Shown: positions 20,413-34,889, numbered from the stretch's first letter. The stretch is 64,000 nt of DNA from Lepidodermella squamata (GCA_047495785.1 JBLDXI010000025.1:744001-808000); one strand, 5' to 3'. Notes: generated by a model from the sequence alone, not told the origin. Numbers and translations: made by a program.

Positions 20413-23400
20413 TCACTCCTTTGATTTCTTATGTTTGACCTTCTCCTTTTCGGCTTCAGGCGTATGACGGCAGCATAGCACAATGCTGATGACGGTTGCA
20501 ACGGCTAAAGCAACGCCAGCTATAATGAGTCCTAGCCTGAAGGCATCGTTGAAAAACCCAGCAGATCCTGGATCAGACTGCCCAGCTTTCAATGGCTTTG
20601 ATTTCAGCTTGACGTCTTTCGCCGTGATCACGAGACCGTCGAGACCAAACATGTCTATGAAACTCGCATCGTCTTTCATAGAGCTCACAGCAGTGCTGAC
20701 TGACTGCTGCACAGTTTCGGTCGTGATTTGCTTATCGCTGCTCACAGAGCTGTTGAAGGTCGCAACAAAGGCCTTGATTTTCTCACTGGGATAAAATACT
20801 CGGTCAAAAGGGAACTATGTGTATGGTGTATGGTTTTAGTTAAGACTTACATGTAAGTAATGCTGGTTATTTCTGTTTGCGGCACAACGATGCCAGCCTT
20901 TCGGTAGATGTTCTGCATCTGATCGATGAGTTCCTGCTTCAAGGCTTGATACTGCGGGCTCGAGGTGTCATTCAGTACGCTTGGGTCGATATTTGACCCA
21001 TTTATCATGATTTTCGCAGCTTGAAGTTCCGTCAAAACCTGCGACCAAAATGCATCCTCGGGTTTTATAGTTGCAAGAGGTGTGGTTGTCGATTTTGTAG
21101 ACGATGTGGTTGTAGTTGTAGTCGAAGTTGTTGTTGAACTTGAACTTGAACTTGAAGAATCCGAAGTTACTGATTCGCCTTTACTAGTTGTCGCTGTAAT
21201 TGCCGATGCAGTTGATCCATCCGTCTTCGCAGTTGCTGTTGAAGATGACGTAGTAGTCGTTGGGGAGCAGTCGAACGTGAAAAAAGTGTTATCGACATCT
21301 TGATAGTCGCAGCCTGCCTGGCCGCAGTGCATACCGAACCCCAGCTTTACTTCATTGTTTCGAATCATATCAGCCAGGCCACTTACAGGCATGTCCGCTA
21401 TCATTTTTGTTGTTATGTTGTCTCTCATGTGCCATACCTGATTAGTTGAGACAATAAAAAGGCAAGAGTACACAACTTTTTAAACTCGCATTAACGTTGA
21501 GCTGATCATACTCAACTATCACTTTTGGAGGACTGCCTTTAGTTATTTCTTGTAGCGCTGTTTGGGTGCTAAAGGCAAGGCCGTTATACGCAGAACTAAT
21601 CCAGGTATTTTGAGTGAGTTCAATCGGAACGGCACTGAAAACACCAAATGATGTGTTGTGCCGCGGCGAGATGACCACACTCAGCCCGCGAAAATTCGAG
21701 CTAGTACCGAAGTAGCGATAATTTGGCGGTACATCGGTGCTTCGATAGATTGAATTCGAGGAATCAGCGATCATAAAGGCGAACCCATCGTTTGAGAATG
21801 GGCCTTGTGCAGAAGTTGGAGTTCGAGAGGTGAATGAAACTTCTGCCCTCCAGCACTTATCAACCGGAATCTAAAAATAATAGCCTTCAATATGATTGAT
21901 CATTCACTTTAAATGTATCCCTAACTGGATCATTCGCCCATGCTGATCCAAACTGCCTGATTTGTGACGGGGTCTTCGGGTATGTATCAGCGTTCGACAG
22001 TGTAAGCGTGTTCCAATTGATATTCACCCTAGTACCGTATATTTCCCAATAGTTGACTGCGAAGATTTGGTGATAAACGAAGATTATATAACTTTTTCAG
22101 AATCTTACTTTGAACACTCATATCGTTCTTCTTTGCCGATAAGTTGCGAATAAATTGAGGGTTCGTGCCATTCAACCCGAGGGGGACGAACGGGTCTGGT
22201 ACAATAGGTTTCACGGGACTGAAATCGCGGTAAAGTATCGATTGGTTTCCTGAGATTGCGGAAACCTCAACTTTGAGTACATCCGTTACATCGAAGGTAC
22301 TCGTCAGGTTAGCATGGCGAGCTCCGAAGCCAAGGTAAAGATACTTCTGATTCAAAATGGGAAATTGAACATCGTTAAAGCATTGTAGAGTAACGCCTGC
22401 TGATGGGAAGGTCATTTGGGCTGAGAGCCCGTTCTGGCTGATTTGAATGGAAACTTCAATTATTTGTTGGCCGCCGGCTAAAAGATTCTGATTCTTGATA
22501 GTCCTGCCGCAGGATGCGATCGGGAAATTGAAAGGAGTCGGGCCCAAACAATCCACCGCATCCTTGTTCAAAGTAGTACCGAATCCAGTTATAACCTGGG
22601 CAAGCGGGTTGATAACGAAACCCGTTGCAACAAAGTTGCATTTATAGCAGTTCAGGCTATAAAATGATCCTAGGCCTAAAGGGGAGCCAGCGTAGTCTGA
22701 AAAAATCAGTTTTATCGACCTTTTAAAAAATTCATTTTCTATTTCATACTTGCCGCAGGACTCGAGTAGTTAGCATTGCATTTTGGTGGTCGAACTCTTG
22801 TATTTCTCTCTGATAACCAGATACCGAGACCCTGTGAAGTGCCATTCATGCGAACGCTGATTTTGATCGCAATGTCGTTCACGGGTGGTAATAGTTGATT
22901 TGACCACATAGCTCCTTCAAGGGGTATGTTGCTACTAGGGTTCATAGGGTCTTTCTCGATCAAACGAACGCTATCACTGAGGCTATCAATAGGTTTAGCA
23001 GGGTATATCTCCCAATTTGTATAGCTTGATCGATTGGATGACTGATCGAAAAAGAAGGCTGATATGTTTCTCAACGGTCGCAAGTCGTAGAATTCAACTC
23101 GAGTTATAATAACGTTGTCCCGAACATCTTCATTCGAGGCACCAAAACCAAGGAAAGCTCTACCACTTGTCGTCAGATCAGCCATACCTTTCACGGTAGC
23201 ATTCGACAAGCAAGCATTTGTTGATTTTGCGATGCGATCGTAAGTCGTGATCGTCAAACTATCCCCCGCAACTTGAACCAGCAGAGTGGCATTGATCGAC
23301 TTTGACTGATCATCATAACCGAGTGGACATGTGGCTAGTTGTGTTTTTCCGTCGTTGTTACGCTCTGATTCAATCATCGGCTGTAGATTTGCAATTGTTG

Positions 23401-24765
23401 GCGAGAAGTCGGCGTACATCTCTCGCGATTTCGTATTTAAAGATAGGCGCAATCCGCGGAAGTTGTAATGATCGGCTCCAGAAGCCCTTGAGGTTTTATT
23501 GGCCCTGGCCGTCAAGGTTGTAGCCTTGTCGACGATGTAGACCAGCATTCCGCTGCCTTTATCTCCCATAGCTTGAATCGAAATGTCAACCTCCAAACGC
23601 CAGTTTGAAACTCCTTTGTTTATAGGCTGGAAAGTAAGTTATATATGAAATCTAACCTCCTTGCTTTTCAAATTTATTCTCACAATTCTGCTCCAGATGG
23701 ATCCGTTGTTGCAAACTTCAGGTTTCTTGGGTTGTAAAGCAAGCCGAGTTGGATAAAGATTTGAAGCCTGCCCCATTGAACGCCAAACACTCTCAACCGG
23801 GGGTTCGAAGAAGAGCGACTGCTCGGGTTTGTACCTAGCCAACGGCAGATCGGTCGGCAATGCTAGCATACCCAGCATTTCTTGGCTTGGGGTTGGATAG
23901 GTCGTGGGATGGACCATTACTTCATATTTAGAACAAATTTGTTGAAGGTCAGATAGTTTCCAACTCGGCAGAGCGACGCCATAGATTGCAAAACAAGCGT
24001 ATTGCCCGTAGGAAAGGTAGTTCGTGTTGTCTTCTAATCTATATACAAAACATTTCTATCAAATAGGCCAGAATAAAAAACAGTAATGAACCTTCTGCCC
24101 AGGGAAATGAATCGGTCATTGGTCGGTGCTAACACCGGCATATCCAAGTCATAGGAGCCCTCCCTTCCCGTGGCGTACGGACCGCAACTCAGTTGGTACG
24201 TGTGGGAATTCGCATCATAAGTCAATGTGATCAACTGCCACGCTGTAGTATTGCATGGAACAGTAATTTCAGAGCCTTCGTCCATAGGATTCGCGGAAAT
24301 TTGATTTGACTTAGGATAGTTAACCCAAACATGCAAACCACGGCCAGTAGTTGGGTCGGTGTACTCGAACAAGGGACCATTTTTCGTAGCAGTGCTTATT
24401 CGGAAAAACGTTGCTATGGTCCAAGAGTTGTCATCAGCTGAAAGATCCAGTTCTTTGCCTTGCAGCTTGATATAGCCATCCATATCACTCCTACATACTT
24501 CAATGGCGGAGACCTGAGAGCCGAGACTCGAGGATCCCAAGGTATTAGGACCAGGTACGTAAGCGTAGGCGCCGGAATTTACTTCTCCATCCAGTCCACT
24601 GCCACTGACATCCCTAACGCCGAACTGGCTGTTCAGTGGCCAATAGCCGATCGGATAGGGCGGTGATGGCTCTGGCAATGGCGGTAGCGTGCAGCCTTGA
24701 ACAAGCTTGTGCAGTGCTGAAATAACCAACAAAGTAAGCGGCATCTTTTTGAGATAAAAGCTCAT
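20413..24765 (-). CDS. Type I membrane protein: LamG/ConA-like + 3 L-type lectin domains + Ser/Thr stalk + SEA-like domain + TM, copy 1
   Basis: GYWPLN..DVSG LamG-like start; three repeats of the L-type lectin signature (GSIWS..NWRLEV, GAMWS, GSAWA..DGFAF; each ends (Y/F/K)LGFG); Thr/Ser tract; SPQYQALKQELIDQM SEA-like helix; TM and short basic tail. Start at 24765 or 24744. Confidence 0.8.
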
Positions 24766-25032
24766 AGTACTGCTCAAGGATAGCGAAGCGATCTCCGATG
24801 TTTATTAAACGGAGCAAATAAACTTCTCTCCGGTTATTGCAATTTATTTTGACCATCTGATTAAAAATGTCAGAGAAGCAAATCCGAATCAACATAGGAA
24901 ATTGTGTAACTGCTCGGAGCAATGCCCGTGAATCGAGATTTAGGATAATTCACATATTATATACTCAACCAACGAAGGAGTAATAAATTACCTTCTCCGC
25001 TTTGATATTATCTTTTCACATCATCCCTTGAA

Positions 25033-25504
25033 AGGCAAATTTGTAAATCCCACCTAGAAACGTCCAGGGTAAAAATTCGAATATTCCGCGGTTTCCCCTA
25101 TTTTCTTCACTCAATATTATTGATTGAAATATTTGATTTAGTAATGGAAAGGACATCATGTCTTAGGACGAAGGAAGAAAAGATCTACTGAGACCAACCA
25201 GCATATTACATATGATCTCTCAAAGATCTTTCCATTACTATAAATCAAGTGCGGAGAACGCATAAATCAATATTAGAAGCTCCCAGGAGTTATGGTTAGA
25301 GATCCAGAAAGAGGACTAAGAAGGCTCTAGATCTTCCCTAAGAGGGTACAAAGGCGCCGCAGGACCAAAAAGTCGATTTTTCTGACATTTTGCTTGTACA
25401 GCGGTTTCTAGGTCATTCAGCCATTCTGACCATTCAGCGTCATTTCAGCGGAATTTTTGAATTTTTACCCTGGACGTTTCTAGGTGGGATTTACAAATGT
25501 GCCG
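25033..25504. mobile_element. MITE with about 55-bp TIRs
   Basis: GGCAAATTTGTAAATCCCACCTAGAAACGTCCAGGGTAAAAATTC and its near-exact reverse complement near 25448-25503; apparent TTGAA flanking duplication. Confidence 0.7.
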
Positions 25505-25704
25505 TTGAAATAAATACTTGCCCGTTTTCGACAACATTTCGCGTCATCTCCACTTCTCACGATTTCTCACAAAGATAACTAACTTCTGGTGCAATTCTCA
25601 CAAATATGGCGATATGTTTTGCTTATAAATGCTTATGATTCCATCTTTCATTTCCATCTTTCTCGATTCAATATTGGGAAACTCTCGTGTCATGTTCTTC
25701 ACTT

Positions 25705-28183
25705 TTAACGCAAATAAACTTGTCTTAATATCACCAAATTCGAGAAAGCAGAAATCAGGTTGGCTGTTGGCACGACGTTCACCAGCGAAATATGGTTTTC
25801 AGAGAGTATAATGCCGATGAAAATCGCAGCGAGTAACATGATGACGTATGAATAAACAAAGGCTGTTATTGCTTTCACATCGCTATACGTTATCCGATCC
25901 ACCCGAGCGTGTCGAGCCTTGACAAGAGAATTCAATAAAAACGCCGAAAACAGCGATATCACAAGCGGTATCCCGGCGAGTCCGAACGCCAATATCGCAA
26001 AAGGATAGCTGGTTATCCCACCAAATATTGACTCAAATTGTTGGCACAGCGTGACGGTTGGCTGAAAGGCTAAGCTGTTATCATGCTCAGAGAAAATCAA
26101 CGGTAGGAGTTGAGTTTCATTTGACGCAGGGCTCAACAAGAGCGCAATGGTCATCAGAATCAGGCTAAATGCCATTGTAAAAGTTGACAACTTCCTGCTG
26201 AGCTGCTGACGTGAGGAATCAATAAAAACCTGATAGTTTCTGCGCCTATTACTCGAGCGAGATCGTGTTGCATTAACCGAAAGGTAGATTGGATTTGAAG
26301 TTTCACGCCGGATATTTGAAGCATTACTTAGCTTTAAAATCAGCATTTCCAGCTTCTGAAAACAGCCGTGAATGACGCAGATTGAAGCGCTGAATGAAAG
26401 AAATGTTTGCATCGAGCATAACACATCAAAGCGGCTGAGCTTCGCCTCGATGCCATAGAACAGGCTGACAAGGAACGAAAGAACATTTCCAAGCAAAATC
26501 AGCTGGCTCGTCGCGACATCTAATTTAGCCGATCTCATTGTGTTGCGCTTAATATTAACAAAAGAGAAAGCTGACGAGATCAGCAGTCCTATTATCGAGA
26601 TTGAAATGAAAACTGAGCTGATATTGCCGGATACAATCGGCTGTGGAATAATAATGATCACCAGCGAGTCTTTTGGAAGAGCATTTCCATCAGTTCTCCA
26701 GTATAATTTGTCCCAATGAACTACAGCCGGATCGCCCTTTCGATTAGATTTGTAGTAACCGATTGTCACCATGTTCGTTCCATTTCCGAATTCGTTAAGT
26801 TTGACTTGATTAAAAACGAATGGCATGCTGCCTGTAGGCCAGTGGTTAGCCTTGTTGTAACTGTAGTCACCCTTTAGGCCTAACACATCTATCCGACTAA
26901 TAGCTTCTAGCATCACATTGACAATGAAAGATCCATTCCTTCTGAAACTATCCGAATTTGTTGTCCAATCCGCCAGGGTGGAATTGAAATCATTTCTCAG
27001 AATATGTTCAGTTTCGTTCAAAAACAGCCCAATTAGGACGAATCGGTCGTAGTAAGTAGGAATCCAGTATTCCCAACCAACAGCTAGTTCGAGTTTATCA
27101 ACACTGTTAGCTAAGTAGCTGTTGAACCAACTACTGGTTACGTCCATTGAGTCTGAAGTATCCTGGCCAAAAATCTCGCTGATCGGAGCATCCCCATAGA
27201 ATATTGTCGTTGCCAAGATTTCTAGCAACATTTTCTTTGTACACCACCCAGCTACGATCTGAGGTATGTCTGAGTTCTCGTTGTAAGCATTCCATGAGTA
27301 ATGAAGATGAACAAACCCTGGCCCAAAAAGGTTATAGCGGTAGAGAAAACAGCCGACCATAGCGCTGTTGACGACATTCAGTAAGATAATCCGTGGTTTT
27401 CGCCGTTGAAGCTCGTCAAATGTTGTCTCAAGTTCGTACATATCGTCTGTGTCGAGTCGCAGCTTAGCCATGTAAACTATAGTGACGTTGTGAGCTTCCA
27501 TTCCATGAACAACAAAGCTGTCGATCACGTTATTGTAGGGGCTTGTATCACTGATTAGGGACACCCTTTTCCACCCAAGTTTATGAACCATGGCTACGAT
27601 GCTATCCGCGGTATAGTCCTGTTTCTCGCCAAACGGGACGAAATTTGGGAATTTTCGCCTTTCGTAATACATTTTAGGTGCAAGTGGGTAAATTACAGTC
27701 TGAAAAGCAGAAATTAAAACACTAAAAGATTTGGATTAAAGAATTTACCCCTAGCATGTTGAATGATGGCATCATGTAGGCAGCGATAGTTTGGGCAATG
27801 TTGCAAAATTCAGCTAGTGCTACGATAGGCAGGCGGTTTGGTGTAGCTGCGTTCTCTCGGAGTTTGTCAACCATTCCTGCCATGAACAAGGCATCATCGC
27901 CCTGATCATCGATCAGCTCGAAAGCGAGATCGTACCTGGTCAGCCAGTTGGGCATCTCTCGCAGCTTTTGCAGCGCTAAATGAGCTGCGACTGTCGTAGT
28001 CGGGCCAAGTGGTATTGCCCCTGAATACATAATCGAAGTGATTATCGACAGAGTTTGCCTATTGTTGGAAGAATTCCTCGGCGATTCAAAAACAAAGAAA
28101 GACGGCATAGTAGCATTCATTAGAATCAACGATACAGACGTTTGCAAGGTGATGGAAACAATCATCATTAGAGCAAGTATCAT
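25705..28183 (-). CDS. Divergent class C GPCR (Venus flytrap + 7TM, GABA-B-like topology), 2 exons
   Basis: Exon 28183-27749, 49-nt intron, exon 27699-25705. Signal peptide; ANF-receptor-like motifs (ERRKFPNF, KLGWKRVSLI, PRIILLN); no Cys-rich domain; seven hydrophobic segments; essentially no C-tail. Confidence 0.82.
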
Positions 28184-28545
28184 CGTTATGTATTGCGAAA
28201 TGCTTCACTCCCGAAATGTGATCTAAATTATATATATAGATGAAGTTTTCCAGTGAGAGAATCTGGGTGAGGATGCAGCTTCGAAATGTCAGGTTCTTTT
28301 CCCGGCTGAAATGTCAAGATATGGTTACATTTCGCGTGGTACGGTGTTATCCCGTTTTAGCATGAGATAATACAGCAAACAGCCATTAGAACCTTTTTCC
28401 GCTTTTTACGTCAAAGTTTCATTTCCGAAAACACGGAAATCAACAGTATTCATCATATTGTGCGGGAAGAGGCGTCAAAATGCTTTCAAATCAGCCTCAT
28501 TTAGGATGGATTTTCACCGGAGCTCATTAGCTTTACAGAATATTA

Positions 28546-28626
28546 TTAGCGAAACCAAATTTGCCTGCTGCGGAACCAAATTCGACTGTAGCGGAACCAA
28601 ATCTGCATTATGCGGAACCTAATTTT
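28546..28626. repeat. Degenerate 21-bp minisatellite (GCGGAACCAAAT core, 4 copies)
   Basis: Core recurs at about 21-nt spacing. Confidence 0.6.
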
Positions 28627-29854
28627 AGCTACGCCAAAGGTCGCTTTTTGAATATTTCCACAAAATTAAAGCTATGCATGAATTCTTAAGAAAAGAATGC
28701 ACCATGCACCGAATTTTACCCTAAATTAATTTTTACCATCAAGATTCAAGTCCCAAACATCTTCAGGAACAGAAATTCCGTCAAAAAATGACCGAAAGCG
28801 TGACAATGTCAAAAAACAACGTACAGGAAGGCTGGCTAAAAATATTAATATAACGCAGAGGGTGGGCGGGATCGAAAAAGCCTCGTGGTCTTCGCCAAAA
28901 GATTCAAACGACTATACTGTGTCTGTCTATATCCGAAAGCGCATTTCTTTTCCTTGTGCAAAGGCTTTCAACGGCTCCAATTACCAATTACGTGTTTATC
29001 ACGAAAAGAAAACGTTGAGAAATTGTCACTGTATGTTTGAAAGAACATCCAGGGTATACATGTTGCTTCATGTCATTTAGGCTACATAATTGTGGATCTG
29101 AAGGACATTGAAACATTGCAGTTAAAATTTATTTCACACGACGTCTGTACGATAAAGACTATTTTCTATAGAATATGCGGCATCATTTTTTCTAGTAAAC
29201 AGAGAAGAAAACGCGTCTCATTTAGAATATATAACACCAGAAAAAATAGCACCCCAATTCATCTACCAAAACCATGAATTTAGTTTCGGTATCTGAATTC
29301 ATGGGGGAAAAAGTTGCAAAATTCTGGGCATTAATTTAATTCCGAAAACTCAGAAATCCCCTAATTCCTGGGCACAATTTTCGAGCAATAATACAAAACT
29401 AAAGTAATTCACCCAGCCAAAAAATCAGTTCTTTCTATAAAATCCCATTTTTTCACAATGTTGGTGCTAGGTAACCGTTCATTGACAATAGAAAATCAAA
29501 TGGAATCGATAGCGATACGATTTTGTCGACATAGCCCTAGGCAAAATAAACTAAAAGTATATCTCAGTGCTATCAAGAGAAAATGGGGGAGGTGCATAAG
29601 CACCTCATGTTACATGGCAAAATTTCAAATAATACCCATCTTTAGAGTTCCAATGAGAAAGTGTGTCACTTCGTAATTAATACTCAAGGAATAAGTTTTG
29701 GAGCATGAAATCGGATGAATTTCGGAAATCCGTAAATTAGTAGATTAGGATACTCACAGGGCACACAGAGTTATCTTCAAAAGGAAATTTTACGAACATA
29801 TAAATCAAACAGCTTTGGTCTTTAAATTATCCGTGTTTCCTTGTAAATTGCGTG

Positions 29855-32800
29855 TCAGCCATTAGACGTGTCTTTCTTTCCCTTCCCGTCTTCGCCCGTT
29901 CGACGGCAGCATAGTCCAATGCTAACTACGGCTACAATCGCAAGAGAAACACCAGCTATAATGAGTCCAAGCCTGAAGGCATCGTCGAAAAAACTGGCAG
30001 ATCTCTGGTCCGACTGCCCAGCTTTCAATGGCTTCGATTTCAGCTTGACGTCTTTCGTCGTGATGACGAGGCCGTCGAGACCAAACATATCTATGAAACT
30101 CGCATCGTCTTTCATAGAGCTCACAGCAGTACTGACTGATTGCTGCACAGTTTCGGTCGTGATTTGCTTATCGCTACTCACAGAGCTGTTGAAGGTCGCA
30201 ACAAAGGCCTTGATTTTCTCACTGGGGTACAATAATCAGTCAGAAGGGAACTATGTGTAAGGTTTTAGCTAAGACTTACATGTATGTAATGCTGGTTATT
30301 TCTGTTTGCGGCACAACAATGCCAGCCTTTCGGTAGATGTTCTGCATCTGATCGATGAGTTGCTGCTTCAAGGCTTGATACTCCGGGCTTGAGGTGTCAT
30401 TCAGAACACTCGGGTCGATATTTGACCCATTTATCATGATTTTCGCAGCTTGGAGTTCCGTCAAAACCTGCGACAAGTATGCATCCTCTGGTTTTATAGT
30501 TGCAAGAGGAGTGGTCGGAGCTTTCGACGTTGGAGAGATAGCTGTTGTAGTTGAGAGTGAACTCGATGATTCCGTTGTAGTTGAGAGTGAACTCGATGAT
30601 TCCGTTGTAGTTGAGAGTGAACTCGATGATTCTGTTGTAGATGCCGGCGTCATAACTGGGAATGAAGTAGATTCCTTCTCAGTGCTAACTTTCGGAGAGG
30701 TTCCAACAGATGATACGTGAACAGTCAATGATGTTGCAGTAATAGGCATAGCCGTATTCTTTGGTGCGCAATCGAAAGTGAAGAAGGCCATGTCGATATC
30801 TTGGTAGTCACATCCCACCTGCGGGAGGCAATGCATGCCAAAGCCTAATTTCGACTGACCAGATCGAATCATATCTGCTAAGCCAGGAACTGGCATGTCC
30901 GCTATCATTTTCGTTGCTCTGCCATCCCGAACATGCCAAACCTTGAAAAGCAATTGATTGATAAGCAAAGAAAATCGGTTTTTCGACGAGTAAAGAACTC
31001 GAGGAATCCTCGTGAAAAATTAGTCTACAACTCACATTCAAATAAGTTTGATTGTATTCAATGACTATCTTCGGATTGTTCCCTGATATTACAGAATTTT
31101 GAAGCGAAGTTTGTCCGCGAGCAGTTAAGCCGTTATAGACGGAACTATCCCATGAAGCCGGGGTAATTCCAGCCGGTACAGGGTTGATTACTCCGAATGA
31201 TGTGTTCTTTTTTGGTGATATTACTATCATGAGACCTTGAAATGTCGCATTGGTGCCAAAGTAGCGGGTCACAGGTGGAATATCCGTTGATCGATAAATT
31301 GAATTAACTGGCTCTGCAATCATGAAGGCGAAGCCATCGCCTTTGTAAGGTCCTGTATAGTCGGCTGGGCGTGCATTTACTACGAATTCAGCTCGCCAAC
31401 AGACATCACTCGGAACCTAGGGGATCATAGAGTTAAACGGGCTACGAGAAATGATATTAGTAATAAGTGAAACTTTTTCATTGGCCCAGGCTGATCCATA
31501 TTGCAGACTTTGATTAATGGGCGGCATTTCGCCATTGGATAGGGTCAACTTCCCCAAATTCAAGTTGACTCGCGTCCCATATATTTCCCAATAATTTACT
31601 GTCATATCAATGCAATTCATAAACATGCGAGCTTGGAAAAACAAAACTTACTTATTCCGCTCGTGTCGTACAATTTGGCCGATAGATTTCGTGCGTAAGT
31701 AGCGTTTCCCCAACCCGTCCTCACCGGGACCAAGGATTCTGGGGCAATCTTCCCCGCAGCCGAGCTGCCTAACCTGGTCGACGTCGTTTGATTATTTGAA
31801 GTTGCATATACCTCAACCTCGACGATTTCCGTCACATCGAGAGTACTTGTAACATTGGCATGCCGAGCTCCGAAACCCAAATACCAGCTTTTCGTATTCA
31901 GAAACGGTAGTTGAACGTCGTTGTAACACTGAATTGTCATATTTTGCACTGGGAAATATAATTTGGCGGAAAGTCCATTCTGGCTAATGTCCATGTGAAC
32001 TTCTAAGATTTTTTGACTGGGTGTTAAAAGGTTGAGAGCCTTCAATTGGTCGTTGCAGGACGCGATCGGGAAGTTGAACGGCTGGGATCCCAGGCAGTCT
32101 ACGGCATCCCAGCTGTTTGTCGACGCTTTCGCTGTGACAATTTGAGTTTCGGGATTGATAACGAGCCCAGCTGCCATGAAACTATATTTGTAGCAATTCA
32201 GCCCGTAAAAGGAGCCGAAACCGAGTGGCGACCCTTCGTAATCTAAAGGCAACAGATTCAAGAATCTCATAATTAAATGAAACGGTTATTATTTCGTTTA
32301 CTTGAAATCGGGCTGCCGTAGCTGGGGTTGCATTTCGGCGGCTTCACCCATGTGTTCACTTGCGAGAACCAAATTCCCAATCCCTGTGAGGTGCCATTCA
32401 TTGCAACGGTCACTTTAATAAGCACATCTTGAACGGAAAAAAATCCCGTCGACCAAATAGACCCTTCAGCTGGAACATTGGTGCTTGGCGAATTAGGATC
32501 TTTTTCGATCAACCTGCCGGATTTAGTCTGCGTTCGCGGGCTAGGAAACTGCTCCCATGCTGCGGATGTATTTCTCACTTGGTCGAACCAGAGAGTCGAT
32601 ATATTTTTCATTGGTCGAAGGTCGTAGAATTCGACTCGCGTGATTGTTACACCATCATGGGCGGCTTCATTAGACGCTCCAAAGCCAACAAAGGCCCGAC
32701 CACTCGTTGTTAGATTCGCCATACCTATGATCGTTGAGTTTGTCAGACAAGCGTTTCCTGTTGCCCTGATTCGGTCCCATACCATCACCGATAGACTATC

Positions 32801-34889
32801 ATTGACAACTTGAGCCACAAGTGTTAGATTGCTAGAGTTCGATGGCTGGTCGAAGTTAAAAAGGCATGTTGCGATCTGGCCAGGTTTTGTCACATTCCGT
32901 TCATTATCTTGGGTAATCTGCAGGTTCTGAACCGTTGCTGCGTAATCGACGAATAGTTGCCGCGGTTCTAGCCGAGCAAACAATCGCAGACCGCGAAATT
33001 GCGATTGATCGGCGCCGTTCGCTCTCGCTGCCTTGTCTGCTCTTGCCGTAAGTGTTGTCACTCTGTCAACTACATAGACAATCATGCCGTTTCCCTTATC
33101 GCCGAGATATTGAAGCGTTATGTCAACTTCGAGCCGCCAGTTTGCCGCCGATTTACTTATAGGCTGTTGAATAATCAAGAAATTCAATGAAAAATCGAAA
33201 ATCAGATATATTGTATGCTTATTCCAGTTTTGGGCTACAGGGTGCGAAGTACAGGGGAGCTGGGGTGCCGGAACACTCGGAACGCTCCGGGACTCGAACC
33301 AGAAGAAGGCTGAAAGAACCACAGGCGAGACCCTTTGGTTTCTTCGGCTGGGCACCGACGAAACCGAGAAAACACCTCAGCTCCAGGATCCTACTTCGCA
33401 CACTGGTGGGCTAGTAGACCCGCCAAGTGATTTCGACCTGATCTCAATCTCCAATCATTTAAAAATAGGGTGTTGTGCAATGATGATTACGCATCAATTG
33501 TTGTCTTTTCAAATGGCTAGATGAGGCTGAAATCGATTGGCCGATCTCATATAGATTTCAGGCTGTTAGTCTTGTCTGGACCTCTCGAGATGGGCGTGCC
33601 CTCAGTACCCACTCCCCTCTCTAAGCTTCATTGAGTCTTGAATTCATGAACAAAATTGAAGTATTTGGACACCATTTACTAGCTCATTCCCTTTATTGAG
33701 AATTCTAGTAACATCCCGAATGCCCCGAATTCACGCTCTCCGAAATTGAGTTTTCATCTGTAATTTTCTTATTTCGAAACTATGAACTTGAAACGTCCTT
33801 GTTTGGGAAATGAATGAAATTATCTTACAATTCTGCTCCAAATCGATCCATTGTTGCATGTCTGAGGCTTTTTGGGCTGAAGAGCCCATTGCGAGGGGTA
33901 AAGACTAGATGCATTGCCAACGAATCGCCAAACATTCTCAACCGGTCGATCGAAAAATAGCGATTGTTCAGGTTTGAACCTTGCTAAGGGCAGGCTTGCT
34001 GGCAGCGGTAGTATGTCCACCCTTGGGCTTGGATAAGTAGTAGGATGCGGCATAACCCCATAAGTAGAGCACACGCGTTGAAGCTCGATAAGTTTCTCGC
34101 GTGGCAGTGTTTCATTGTGAATCGAAAAGCAAGCAAATTGACCCATATTTAAATACTGCGTATTGTCTGCCATCCTGTAAGCGAAATGTTTCTGCTAAAC
34201 TGATAAATTAAAATAGAAAATGCCTACCGTCTACCAAGAGTAAAGCGCTCACTTGTTCTAGCGCGAAACTCTATCAGCCCAAGTCTAGCACCGTTGATAG
34301 TGTTTGGGCTATCGATGCCGCAATACAGCGTGTAAGTATGCTGAGAAAAGTCGTAAGTCAAAGCGACGAACTTCCACGTATCAAGCTTGCATGCAAAAGA
34401 CTGGAAGCTACCACTGTCAACCGGGTTGAAAAACAACCTATTTTTTGAATCGTAGTTGGCCCAAACGTGTAAACCATAGTTCCCATCGACAAGAGTATAT
34501 TCAAATATCGGGCCAACCGTGGTGGTAGATGGGACTCTGACGAAAGCGGCAATGGTCCAGGAGCTTTTACTCGCCGTGAGATTAAATTCTTTTCCTTGAA
34601 ATTTGACAAAGCTATCATAATCGCCACGGCAAATTTCGATGGCTGAAGTTGCGGATCCAAGCGAAAAATTCGAAGTGGAATTCGGACCTTGGACATACGC
34701 ATAGCTTCCCCCATTCATCTCGCCATCTAAGCCATTGCCGCTTACGTCCCTTACTCCATACTGGCTGTTCAAAGGCCAGTAGCCTTTAGCAGGGGGCAGT
34801 GATGGGTCAGGCAATGCTGGTAACGAGCAATCCTGAATGGTCACAGCGAAGAAATTTGCTGAAAAAATTGCGATAACAAGCGACAACAT
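29855..34889 (-). CDS. LamG + 3 L-type lectin + mucin + SEA-like + TM receptor, copy 2
   Basis: Collinear with copy 1, with matching intron positions; ATG at 34889 (MLSLVIAIF...); KGDGFAF in lectin domain 3. Confidence 0.8.
30544..30640. repeat. 30-bp x3 coding tandem repeat (TTESSSSLST) in the mucin stalk
   Basis: GTTGTAGTTGAGAGTGAACTCGATGATTCC three times (last unit near-exact). Confidence 0.95.
33238..33405. mobile_element. 168-bp hAT-like MITE in an intron
   Basis: TIRs CAGGGTGCGAAGTA / TACTTCGCACACTG; 8-bp TSD TTGGGCTA / GTGGGCTA (7 of 8 match); internal B-box-like GGTTCGAGTCCC on the minus strand. Confidence 0.7.

Follow-up and report, generated by a model that had tools for sequence, protein, structure and literature searches.

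Putative mucin-stalked surface glycoproteins with three predicted L-type lectin folds encoded by paralogous genes of Lepidodermella squamata

Two intact paralogous genes on the minus strand, of 8 exons each (genes 1 and 2), occupy positions 20413-34889 of a 64,000-nucleotide window from the genome of Lepidodermella squamata (contig C25, positions 744001-808000; GC content, ~43-44%). Together with a third paralog on the same contig (~582.9-587.2 kb, ~160 kb from the pair, with the same exon plan and ~30% identity), they most probably encode mucin-stalked cell-surface glycoproteins (probability of about 0.65), in which four beta-sandwich modules would serve in binding or adhesion and the lectin-derived heads would largely lack a canonical sugar site. 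Both genes show a common order of parts: a signal peptide, a LamG_3-like domain, three homologous domains of ~225 amino acids (aa), a Ser/Thr-rich stalk, a SEA-like module, a transmembrane (TM) helix, a Cys-Cys pair, and a short tail. The initial annotation of the window had proposed a cell-surface receptor pair with this architecture, and reading of the exon plan, stalk, TM helix, and tail bore out the shared layout, the LamG and SEA matches being weak. The ends of the annotated span were also exact, 20413 being the last base of the gene 1 stop codon and 34889 the A of the gene 2 ATG. Lectins are not mentioned in the L. squamata genome paper (PMC11660948).

The three repeats are related to one another and are predicted to share a fold. 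Domains 1 and 3 align well (mutual match, E = 1e-7), and a profile from which domain 2 sequences had been excluded still found, in register, the domain 2 exons of each of the three paralogs (per-sequence P of 2e-6 to 3e-5). Searches, alignments, and fold predictions were made with single exons throughout, which lowers the sensitivity of searching. AlphaFold2 models cover two domains, namely, domain 3 of paralog 3, which is contained complete in one exon (L013:7850-8836), and domain 1 of gene 1 (exon C). The modelling alignments leave out the fragments of exons B and E, which are short and were misaligned by MAFFT. Structures were compared with Foldseek and VIA.

The model of paralog 3 domain 3 (36-row alignment) reached a predicted local distance difference test score (pLDDT) of 75 and a predicted template modelling score (pTM) of 0.76. 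Aligned against 48,161 PDB representatives, it matched p58/ERGIC-53 best (Z 16.2 over 177 residues at 2.8 Å), followed by ERGIC-53 (15.8), VIP36 (15.1), Emp47p (14.2), an Entamoeba legume-lectin-like domain (14.0), and peanut lectin (13.7), while generic sandwiches such as galectins and GH32 beta-sandwich modules scored ≤12.1. Nearly all of its listed Foldseek matches were legume lectins (including arcelin and alpha-amylase-inhibitor relatives), ERGIC-53, VIP36, and Emp46p, with E values of 4e-6 to 8e-5. The gene 1 exon C model, which holds domain 1 without its first ~55 residues together with a fragment of domain 2, had a pLDDT of mostly 75-93 over residues 1-185. Its top 12 Foldseek matches were all VIP36 (E = 8e-7 to 5e-6), VIA gave Z scores of 13.6 for ERGIC-53 (167 residues), 13.4 for p58, and 13.2 for VIP36 at 20% identity, and residue 1 of the model aligned to about residue 106 of VIP36, as expected with the first strands of the domain in exon B.

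Profile comparisons also led to VIP36. Run against 177,635 PDB sequences, the family profile had VIP36 as its sole match at E ≤ 10 (E = 0.49, in register), with the motifs W-x-V-x-F, GDG-x-A-x-W, and F-x-G-L shared in the alignment. The same profile matched three consecutive exons of a VIP36-like gene of this genome collinearly (P = 5e-6, 2e-5, and 4e-3), a suggestive result of a directed test that lies below a database-wide standard. A phmmer search with exon C against PDB sequences gave chance-level matches to cAMP kinases only. A genome-wide exon-wise scan with Pfam Lectin_leg-like (PF03388) returned two other genes, on contigs C21 and C55, and not the C25 paralogs.

Several points weigh against the assignment. 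PF03388 gave no match, even at E ≤ 10, in exons of the three paralogs and of eight distant copies of the family, and the repeats thus fall outside this Pfam family as searched exon by exon. The margin of gene 1 domain 1 over generic sandwiches is only 1.5-2 Z units, in a model lacking the first ~55 residues, and both models derive from shallow alignments of 30-36 rows from a single genome. The evidence for homology with L-type lectins accordingly comes from fold prediction and from directed profile comparisons in which the matches were weak. Judged by the models, an L-type lectin fold of the repeats is nevertheless well supported, as the initial annotation had suggested, and their distant common descent with L-type lectins is probable.

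Residues of the sugar site were assigned by sequence register, from profile alignments to VIP36 and to the VIP36-like gene of this genome. The VIP36 numbering used (D131, D162, N166, H190, and D193) agrees with the 2duo sequence in the profile alignment. In domain 1, the Asp of the xDG motif is replaced by Ser in gene 1 (KGSG) and by Asn in gene 2 (KGNG), and in domain 2 it is replaced by Gln in both genes (TSQG). Of the repeats of the pair, domain 3 alone retains it (as SNDGFAF in gene 1 and KGDGFAF in gene 2), and there it is the equivalent of VIP36 D131 and ERGIC-53 D121; these motifs and the survival of the Asp in domain 3 alone had been read correctly for genes 1 and 2 in the initial annotation. 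Domain 3 of both genes also keeps the Asn equivalent to N166, but the calcium ligand D162 is represented by Ser, and a YDH..DG-like stretch carrying the H190/D193 pair was not identifiable in the sequence register, so that the canonical calcium-dependent sugar site is incomplete even in this domain. In paralog 3, the Asp is found in domain 2 (SDGVAIW) and is absent from domains 1 and 3; no single domain therefore keeps it across the family. On this register, no domain appears to carry a complete canonical site: canonical calcium-dependent mannose binding would be lost in domains 1 and 2 and at best partly kept in domain 3, and any sugar binding by the repeats is hypothetical.

Orthodox L-type lectins are encoded elsewhere in the genome. 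The VIP36-like gene (C21:1846645-1847700; L004:1054-2231) keeps the motifs GDG, LDTYSN, and YDHDTDG and ends in KRFY, and a second PF03388 gene lies at C55:1187226-1187774. Given the intact site and KRFY end of the VIP36-like gene, ordinary lectin function between the endoplasmic reticulum (ER) and the Golgi is plausibly covered by genes other than the C25 paralogs.

The N-termini of both genes are signal-peptide-like, and the remainder of exon A likely encodes a concanavalin A (ConA)-like/LamG_3 domain, because one Pfam model, Laminin_G_3 (PF13385), gave three independent weak matches, in gene 1 (E = 7e-4; 20.2 bits), gene 2 (E = 1.8e-4; 22.1 bits), and paralog 3 (E = 1.1e-3; 19.6 bits), against a cutoff of 27.6. 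The last strand of this domain in gene 1 is probably found at the start of exon B (about 23920-24038). The stalks of the pair are ~80 aa long with 55-60% Ser plus Thr, and N-glycosylation sequons number 18-26.

Between the stalk and the TM helix, where a SEA domain would be expected, sits the SEA-like module. Searched in pieces, it matched Pfam SEA (PF01390) with E values of 0.027 in gene 1 and 0.016 in gene 2 (15.0-15.7 bits versus a cutoff of 26.4), at profile positions 18-43 only, and a profile of the region from the three paralogs had MUC1 SEA as its two best PDB matches (E = 0.016). Both the LamG and the SEA assignments lie below Pfam thresholds, which counts against the architecture proposed here. 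The G/SVVV autoproteolysis motif, which occurs in a subset of SEA domains, was not found in the module, where the stretch reads ...TSITY / IEKIKAFVATF without Gly-Ser. Genome-wide, the anchor exon (SEA-like/TM) is confined to the three paralogs on C25, the sole further signal being a weak SEA-like match at each of two sites on contig C9. The latter (C9:4359714-4359851 and C9:4366543-4366734; E = 1e-5 and 5e-4, respectively) correspond to the second half of the C25 SEA-like module, and other SEA-anchored genes are possible.

The TM helix comprises 22 hydrophobic residues and is followed by a Cys-Cys-Arg that is invariant in all three paralogs. The tails of the pair are basic, 18-20 aa long, and end in ...KHKKSKE and ...KKDTSNG; none of the trafficking ends KKXX, KKFF, and KRFY is present on them, and Pfam kinase models had no match in the last exon. 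With tails of this length and no recognizable signalling module, the label of receptor given in the initial annotation was not upheld.

Exon limits were set by comparing stop-to-stop reading frames between the two genes and seeking in-frame GT-AG junctions, and protein lengths follow from coordinate arithmetic (Table 1). Each of the 14 introns in the pair has GT-AG ends and leaves the reading frame intact. They measure 52-65 nt in gene 1 and 53-94 nt in gene 2, with one exception of 665 nt in the latter, and both coding sequence (CDS) lengths are multiples of 3. The exception, intron 2 of gene 2 (33164-33828, minus strand), compares with 52-94 nt in the 13 others and may hold an inserted element. 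In exon-wise blastp, the genes match each other at E values of 1e-16 to 1e-118; the last exon reaches 85% identity, compared with 48-64% for exons A to G.

The duplication behind genes 1 and 2 is old, and both copies have been under purifying selection, as shown by a proportion of synonymous differences (pS) of 0.76-0.82 in exons A to F, which is saturated, with a proportion of nonsynonymous differences (pN) of 0.22-0.36. Their 3' ends, which encode the anchor, have been homogenized by gene conversion. In the converted tract, which extends over intron 7 and the sequences for the SEA-like module and the TM region, nucleotide identity is 88% and synonymous divergence (dS) is as low as 0.21-0.36, with a ratio of nonsynonymous to synonymous divergence (dN/dS) of 0.11-0.28; outside the tract, pS is saturated at 0.73-0.82 across the rest of the gene.

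In the interpretation favored here, genes 1 and 2 and paralog 3 would encode type I membrane glycoproteins, in which an O-glycosylatable Ser/Thr stalk would hold the four beta-sandwich modules off the membrane and the juxtamembrane Cys-Cys would probably be palmitoylated. Residence at the cell surface is a reasonable inference from the mucin stalk, the SEA-like module next to the membrane, and the lack of a KKFF/KRFY-type end, and the modules would function in binding or adhesion rather than as ER-Golgi cargo receptors. The ligand may be a glycan bound in a noncanonical manner, or it may not be a glycan at all. Because the tail is so short, signalling would require a partner protein as a relay.

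The same features could also belong to true multivalent lectins, in which domain 3, and perhaps domains 1 and 2 as well, would recognize glycans from microbes, food, or neighboring cells and the protein would act as a pattern-recognition or adhesion receptor. The L-type lectin fold of the models, the D131 and N166 equivalents kept in domain 3 of both genes, and the presentation of several heads on a long stalk are all consistent with such a function. It is nonetheless unlikely, given the loss of the Asp in domains 1 and 2, the Ser in place of D162 and the unidentifiable H190/D193 pair in domain 3, the shift of the Asp to domain 2 in paralog 3, and the lack of a signalling module. Furthermore, many domains with the L-type lectin fold, including arcelins and those of plant lectin receptor kinases (LecRKs), do not bind sugar. 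Of the surface glycan or microbe sensor envisaged in the initial annotation, the lectin fold thus stands, whereas sensing is not supported by an incomplete canonical site. Degenerate sugar sites, together with a stalk, SEA-like module, and TM helix arranged as in membrane-tethered mucins, the 18-26 sequons, and the short tail, would instead suit structural parts of the cell coat, that is, mucin-like anchors without a role in recognition whose beta-sandwich modules would link the epidermal membrane with the cuticle or glycocalyx by contacts between proteins. Lepidodermella has an elaborate scaled cuticle, which also speaks for anchors of this kind; the occurrence of the same domain family beside exons of Cys-loop channels, where ligand binding would be more natural, makes a purely structural role rather improbable.

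Two further explanations carry far less weight. ERGIC-53 and VIP36 are the closest solved structures and have type I topology and a short tail in common with the C25 products, which could therefore be ER-Golgi cargo receptors with triplicated carbohydrate-recognition domains. This is very improbable, as the tails lack KKFF, KRFY, and KKXX, the combination of mucin stalk and SEA-like module is characteristic of proteins at the cell surface, the site for calcium and sugar has degenerated, and the genome holds a canonical VIP36-like gene ending in KRFY and a second L-type lectin gene elsewhere. That the gene models are artefacts or decaying pseudogenes would agree with the finding of no annotated protein for these genes in protein libraries, but it is scarcely credible for genes with 16 of 16 exons open, regular introns with junctions in frame, saturated synonymous sites at the pN given above, the dN/dS given above for the converted tract, and an exon structure kept in a third paralog at ~30% identity.

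The repeats belong to a large family within the 121.2-Mb assembly (151 contigs). A profile from domains 1 and 3 of the C25 paralogs found copies on contigs C7, C11, C32, C46, and C3 (E = 2e-7 to 8e-3), and a second-round profile gave at least 126 exon matches at E ≤ 1e-3, clustered on C7, C3, and C11. Dense clusters of family exons lie at C7:3.15-3.60 Mb, C7:4.22-4.26 Mb, C3:0.14-0.50 Mb, and C11:0.21-0.34 Mb; some of these exons have in-frame stops, and in most copies the coding sequence is interrupted by an intron immediately downstream of the xDG strand. At C7:4,238,500-4,248,400, two family copies (4.239-4.243 Mb) are found ~1.1 kb upstream, on the same strand, of a Neur_chan_LBD exon (E = 1.4e-7), an adjacency from which a single transcript is putative. 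One exon at C32:3061555-3062160 (L039:1501-2124) encodes almost the whole of a lectin-fold domain, in which the GDGFAV motif is intact; this domain is followed directly by a Thr-rich stalk, and may represent another surface protein of different architecture. A genome scan for Neur_chan_LBD gave 2530 first-look candidates, with 163 matches among the 150 candidates scored, and the Cys-loop channel repertoire appears unusually large for a 121-Mb genome.

The proposal of a secretory-pathway lectin redeployed at the surface, made in the initial annotation, holds as regards the fold but has to be widened, since the repeats belong to a family that has no fewer than 126 exon matches and also occurs beside Cys-loop channel exons. 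A still broader view is possible, if doubtful, in which the L-type lectin fold would be a general and rapidly diversifying extracellular binding module in this lineage (probably the gastrotrichs), its 126 or more exon copies being carried on different chassis and forming a lineage-specific recognition repertoire for chemosensation, immunity, or adhesion. The chassis would be Cys-loop channels and the LamG/mucin/SEA anchor, and the three C25 genes would be the membrane-tethered, multivalent, non-channel members. By analogy, such a repertoire may be comparable in logic to other expanded receptor families.

Gastrotrichs are barely sampled, and two protein searches, limited by the single-exon query, candidate length, and word matching, gave no convincing relative outside this genome. 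With exon C as a single-exon query against 1.84 billion representative proteins, phmmer found three weak matches (E = 1.7e-9 to 1.7e-4) with unrelated Pfam content (CBM_4_9 and FG-GAP), which were judged uninformative. A profile search of a 5.8-billion-protein set found nothing at E ≤ 0.01 among the 8000 candidates scored; as it was confined to lengths 0.55-1.75 times that of the query, it is hardly informative on longer relatives. A feature search of the ESM Atlas returned generic bacterial beta-sandwich and carbohydrate-binding module clusters with few shared features and yielded no lead.

Table 1. Coordinates of the two paralogous genes, their parts, and the intervening gene, numbered from the first letter of the window
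Feature	Position	Strand	Remarks
Gene 1	20413-24765	minus	8 exons; 1319 aa; CDS of 3960 nt; ATG (24765) to TGA (20413-20415)
Gene 1 exons A to H	24092-24765, 23684-24038, 22750-23626, 22109-22696, 21926-22056, 21496-21870, 20851-21437, 20413-20785	minus	
Gene 1 signal peptide and likely LamG_3-like (ConA-like) domain	24092-24765 (exon A)	minus	Pfam Laminin_G_3
Gene 1 domain 1	23040-23860	minus	End of exon B and opening ~195 codons of exon C; xDG motif reads KGSG
Gene 1 domain 2	22240-23038	minus	End of exon C and opening ~150 codons of exon D; more diverged than domains 1 and 3
Gene 1 domain 3	21270-22056	minus	Exon E, exon F, and start of exon G
Gene 1 Ser/Thr-rich mucin-like stalk	21036-21278	minus	~80 aa; 60% Ser plus Thr
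Gene 1 SEA-like module	20590-21035	minus	Split by intron 7; Pfam SEA below threshold
Gene 1 TM helix, juxtamembrane Cys-Cys, basic tail, and stop	20413-20589	minus	Tail of 18 aa
Gene 2	29855-34889	minus	8 exons; 1331 aa; CDS of 3996 nt; ATG at 34889; stop at 29855-29857
Gene 2 exons A to H	34228-34889, 33829-34174, 32302-33163, 31652-32242, 31474-31598, 31036-31416, 30280-30941, 29855-30221	minus	
Gene 2 stalk	about 30480-30710	minus	Three tandem TTESSSSLST units
Gene-conversion tract	20445-21118 (gene 1) versus 29881-30553 (gene 2)	minus	blastn; 682 nt; 88% nucleotide identity versus 66-70% elsewhere
Gene between the pair	25705-28183	minus	Unrelated; class-C-GPCR-like; Pfam ANF_receptor (E = 9e-8), then several hydrophobic segments

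The gene that lies between the two paralogs is unrelated to them and may be a divergent class-C G-protein-coupled receptor (GPCR), although Pfam 7tm_3 gave no match in it. Tandem duplication of a unit made up of the lectin-fold gene and the GPCR was considered and rejected, as blastn indicated duplication of the lectin-fold gene alone.

Known animal L-type lectins are almost exclusively single-domain ER-Golgi cargo receptors. Cargo receptors of this type from animals and fungi (ERGIC-53/LMAN1, VIP36/LMAN2, and Emp46p/Emp47p) are the best structural matches of the C25 repeats (Z 13-16), have the three motifs listed above and a C-terminal G-x-S-A ... F-x-x-L strand in register with them, and are likewise type I membrane proteins with a short tail. 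Unlike the C25 products, however, they have one lectin domain rather than three and lack LamG, a mucin stalk, and SEA, whereas the C25 genes have no PF03388 score, have replaced most of the calcium and sugar ligands, and lack a KKFF/KRFY end. The family copies near the Cys-loop channel exon on C7 are of the same family as the C25 repeats (E = 2e-7 with a profile from the C25 paralogs alone) and are equally invisible to Pfam, but the C25 genes differ from them in using a mucin/SEA/TM anchor as the mount for three heads and a LamG-like domain. This anchor resembles tethered mucins of the MUC1 type in its Ser/Thr stalk (with tandem repeats in gene 2), SEA-like module beside a single TM helix, and short tail; it differs in a stalk of only ~80 aa, in the absence of the G/SVVV motif, and in that a chain of four globular beta-sandwich domains takes the place of an extended mucin domain.

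Plant LecRKs carry an L-type lectin ectodomain, often with a degenerate sugar site, on a plasma-membrane protein with one lectin domain and a cytoplasmic kinase. They are the nearest precedent for use of the fold at the cell surface, although the C25 products bear three lectin-fold domains and lack one for signalling, and nothing suggests common descent of the two architectures. The C-terminal L-lectin-like domain of thrombospondin and the L-lectin modules of bacterial adhesins (SraP and Aap) provide further cases of the same sandwich in extracellular adhesive proteins (Z 10.7-11.5), with scores below those of ERGIC-53 and VIP36 and in unrelated contexts. Taken singly, the fold and the anchor of mucin/SEA type are known already, as is the deployment of this fold at the surface of plant cells. 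Literature searches found no description of an architecture combining LamG, three lectin-fold domains, mucin, and SEA, and as far as was found, neither the triple-domain animal architecture nor the large diverged family has been described.

The C25 genes thus place a predicted L-type lectin fold three times per protein on a stalk of the cell-surface mucin type, and they do so within a family that is too diverged for Pfam and that nevertheless accounts for >100 exons of a single small genome. At the level of the models, a fold can be given to a large domain family that had no annotation in this genome. If the surface location and binding function are true, these proteins would be an animal counterpart of the surface-receptor use of the fold in plants and would open an approach to the biology of a phylum for which molecular data are nearly absent.

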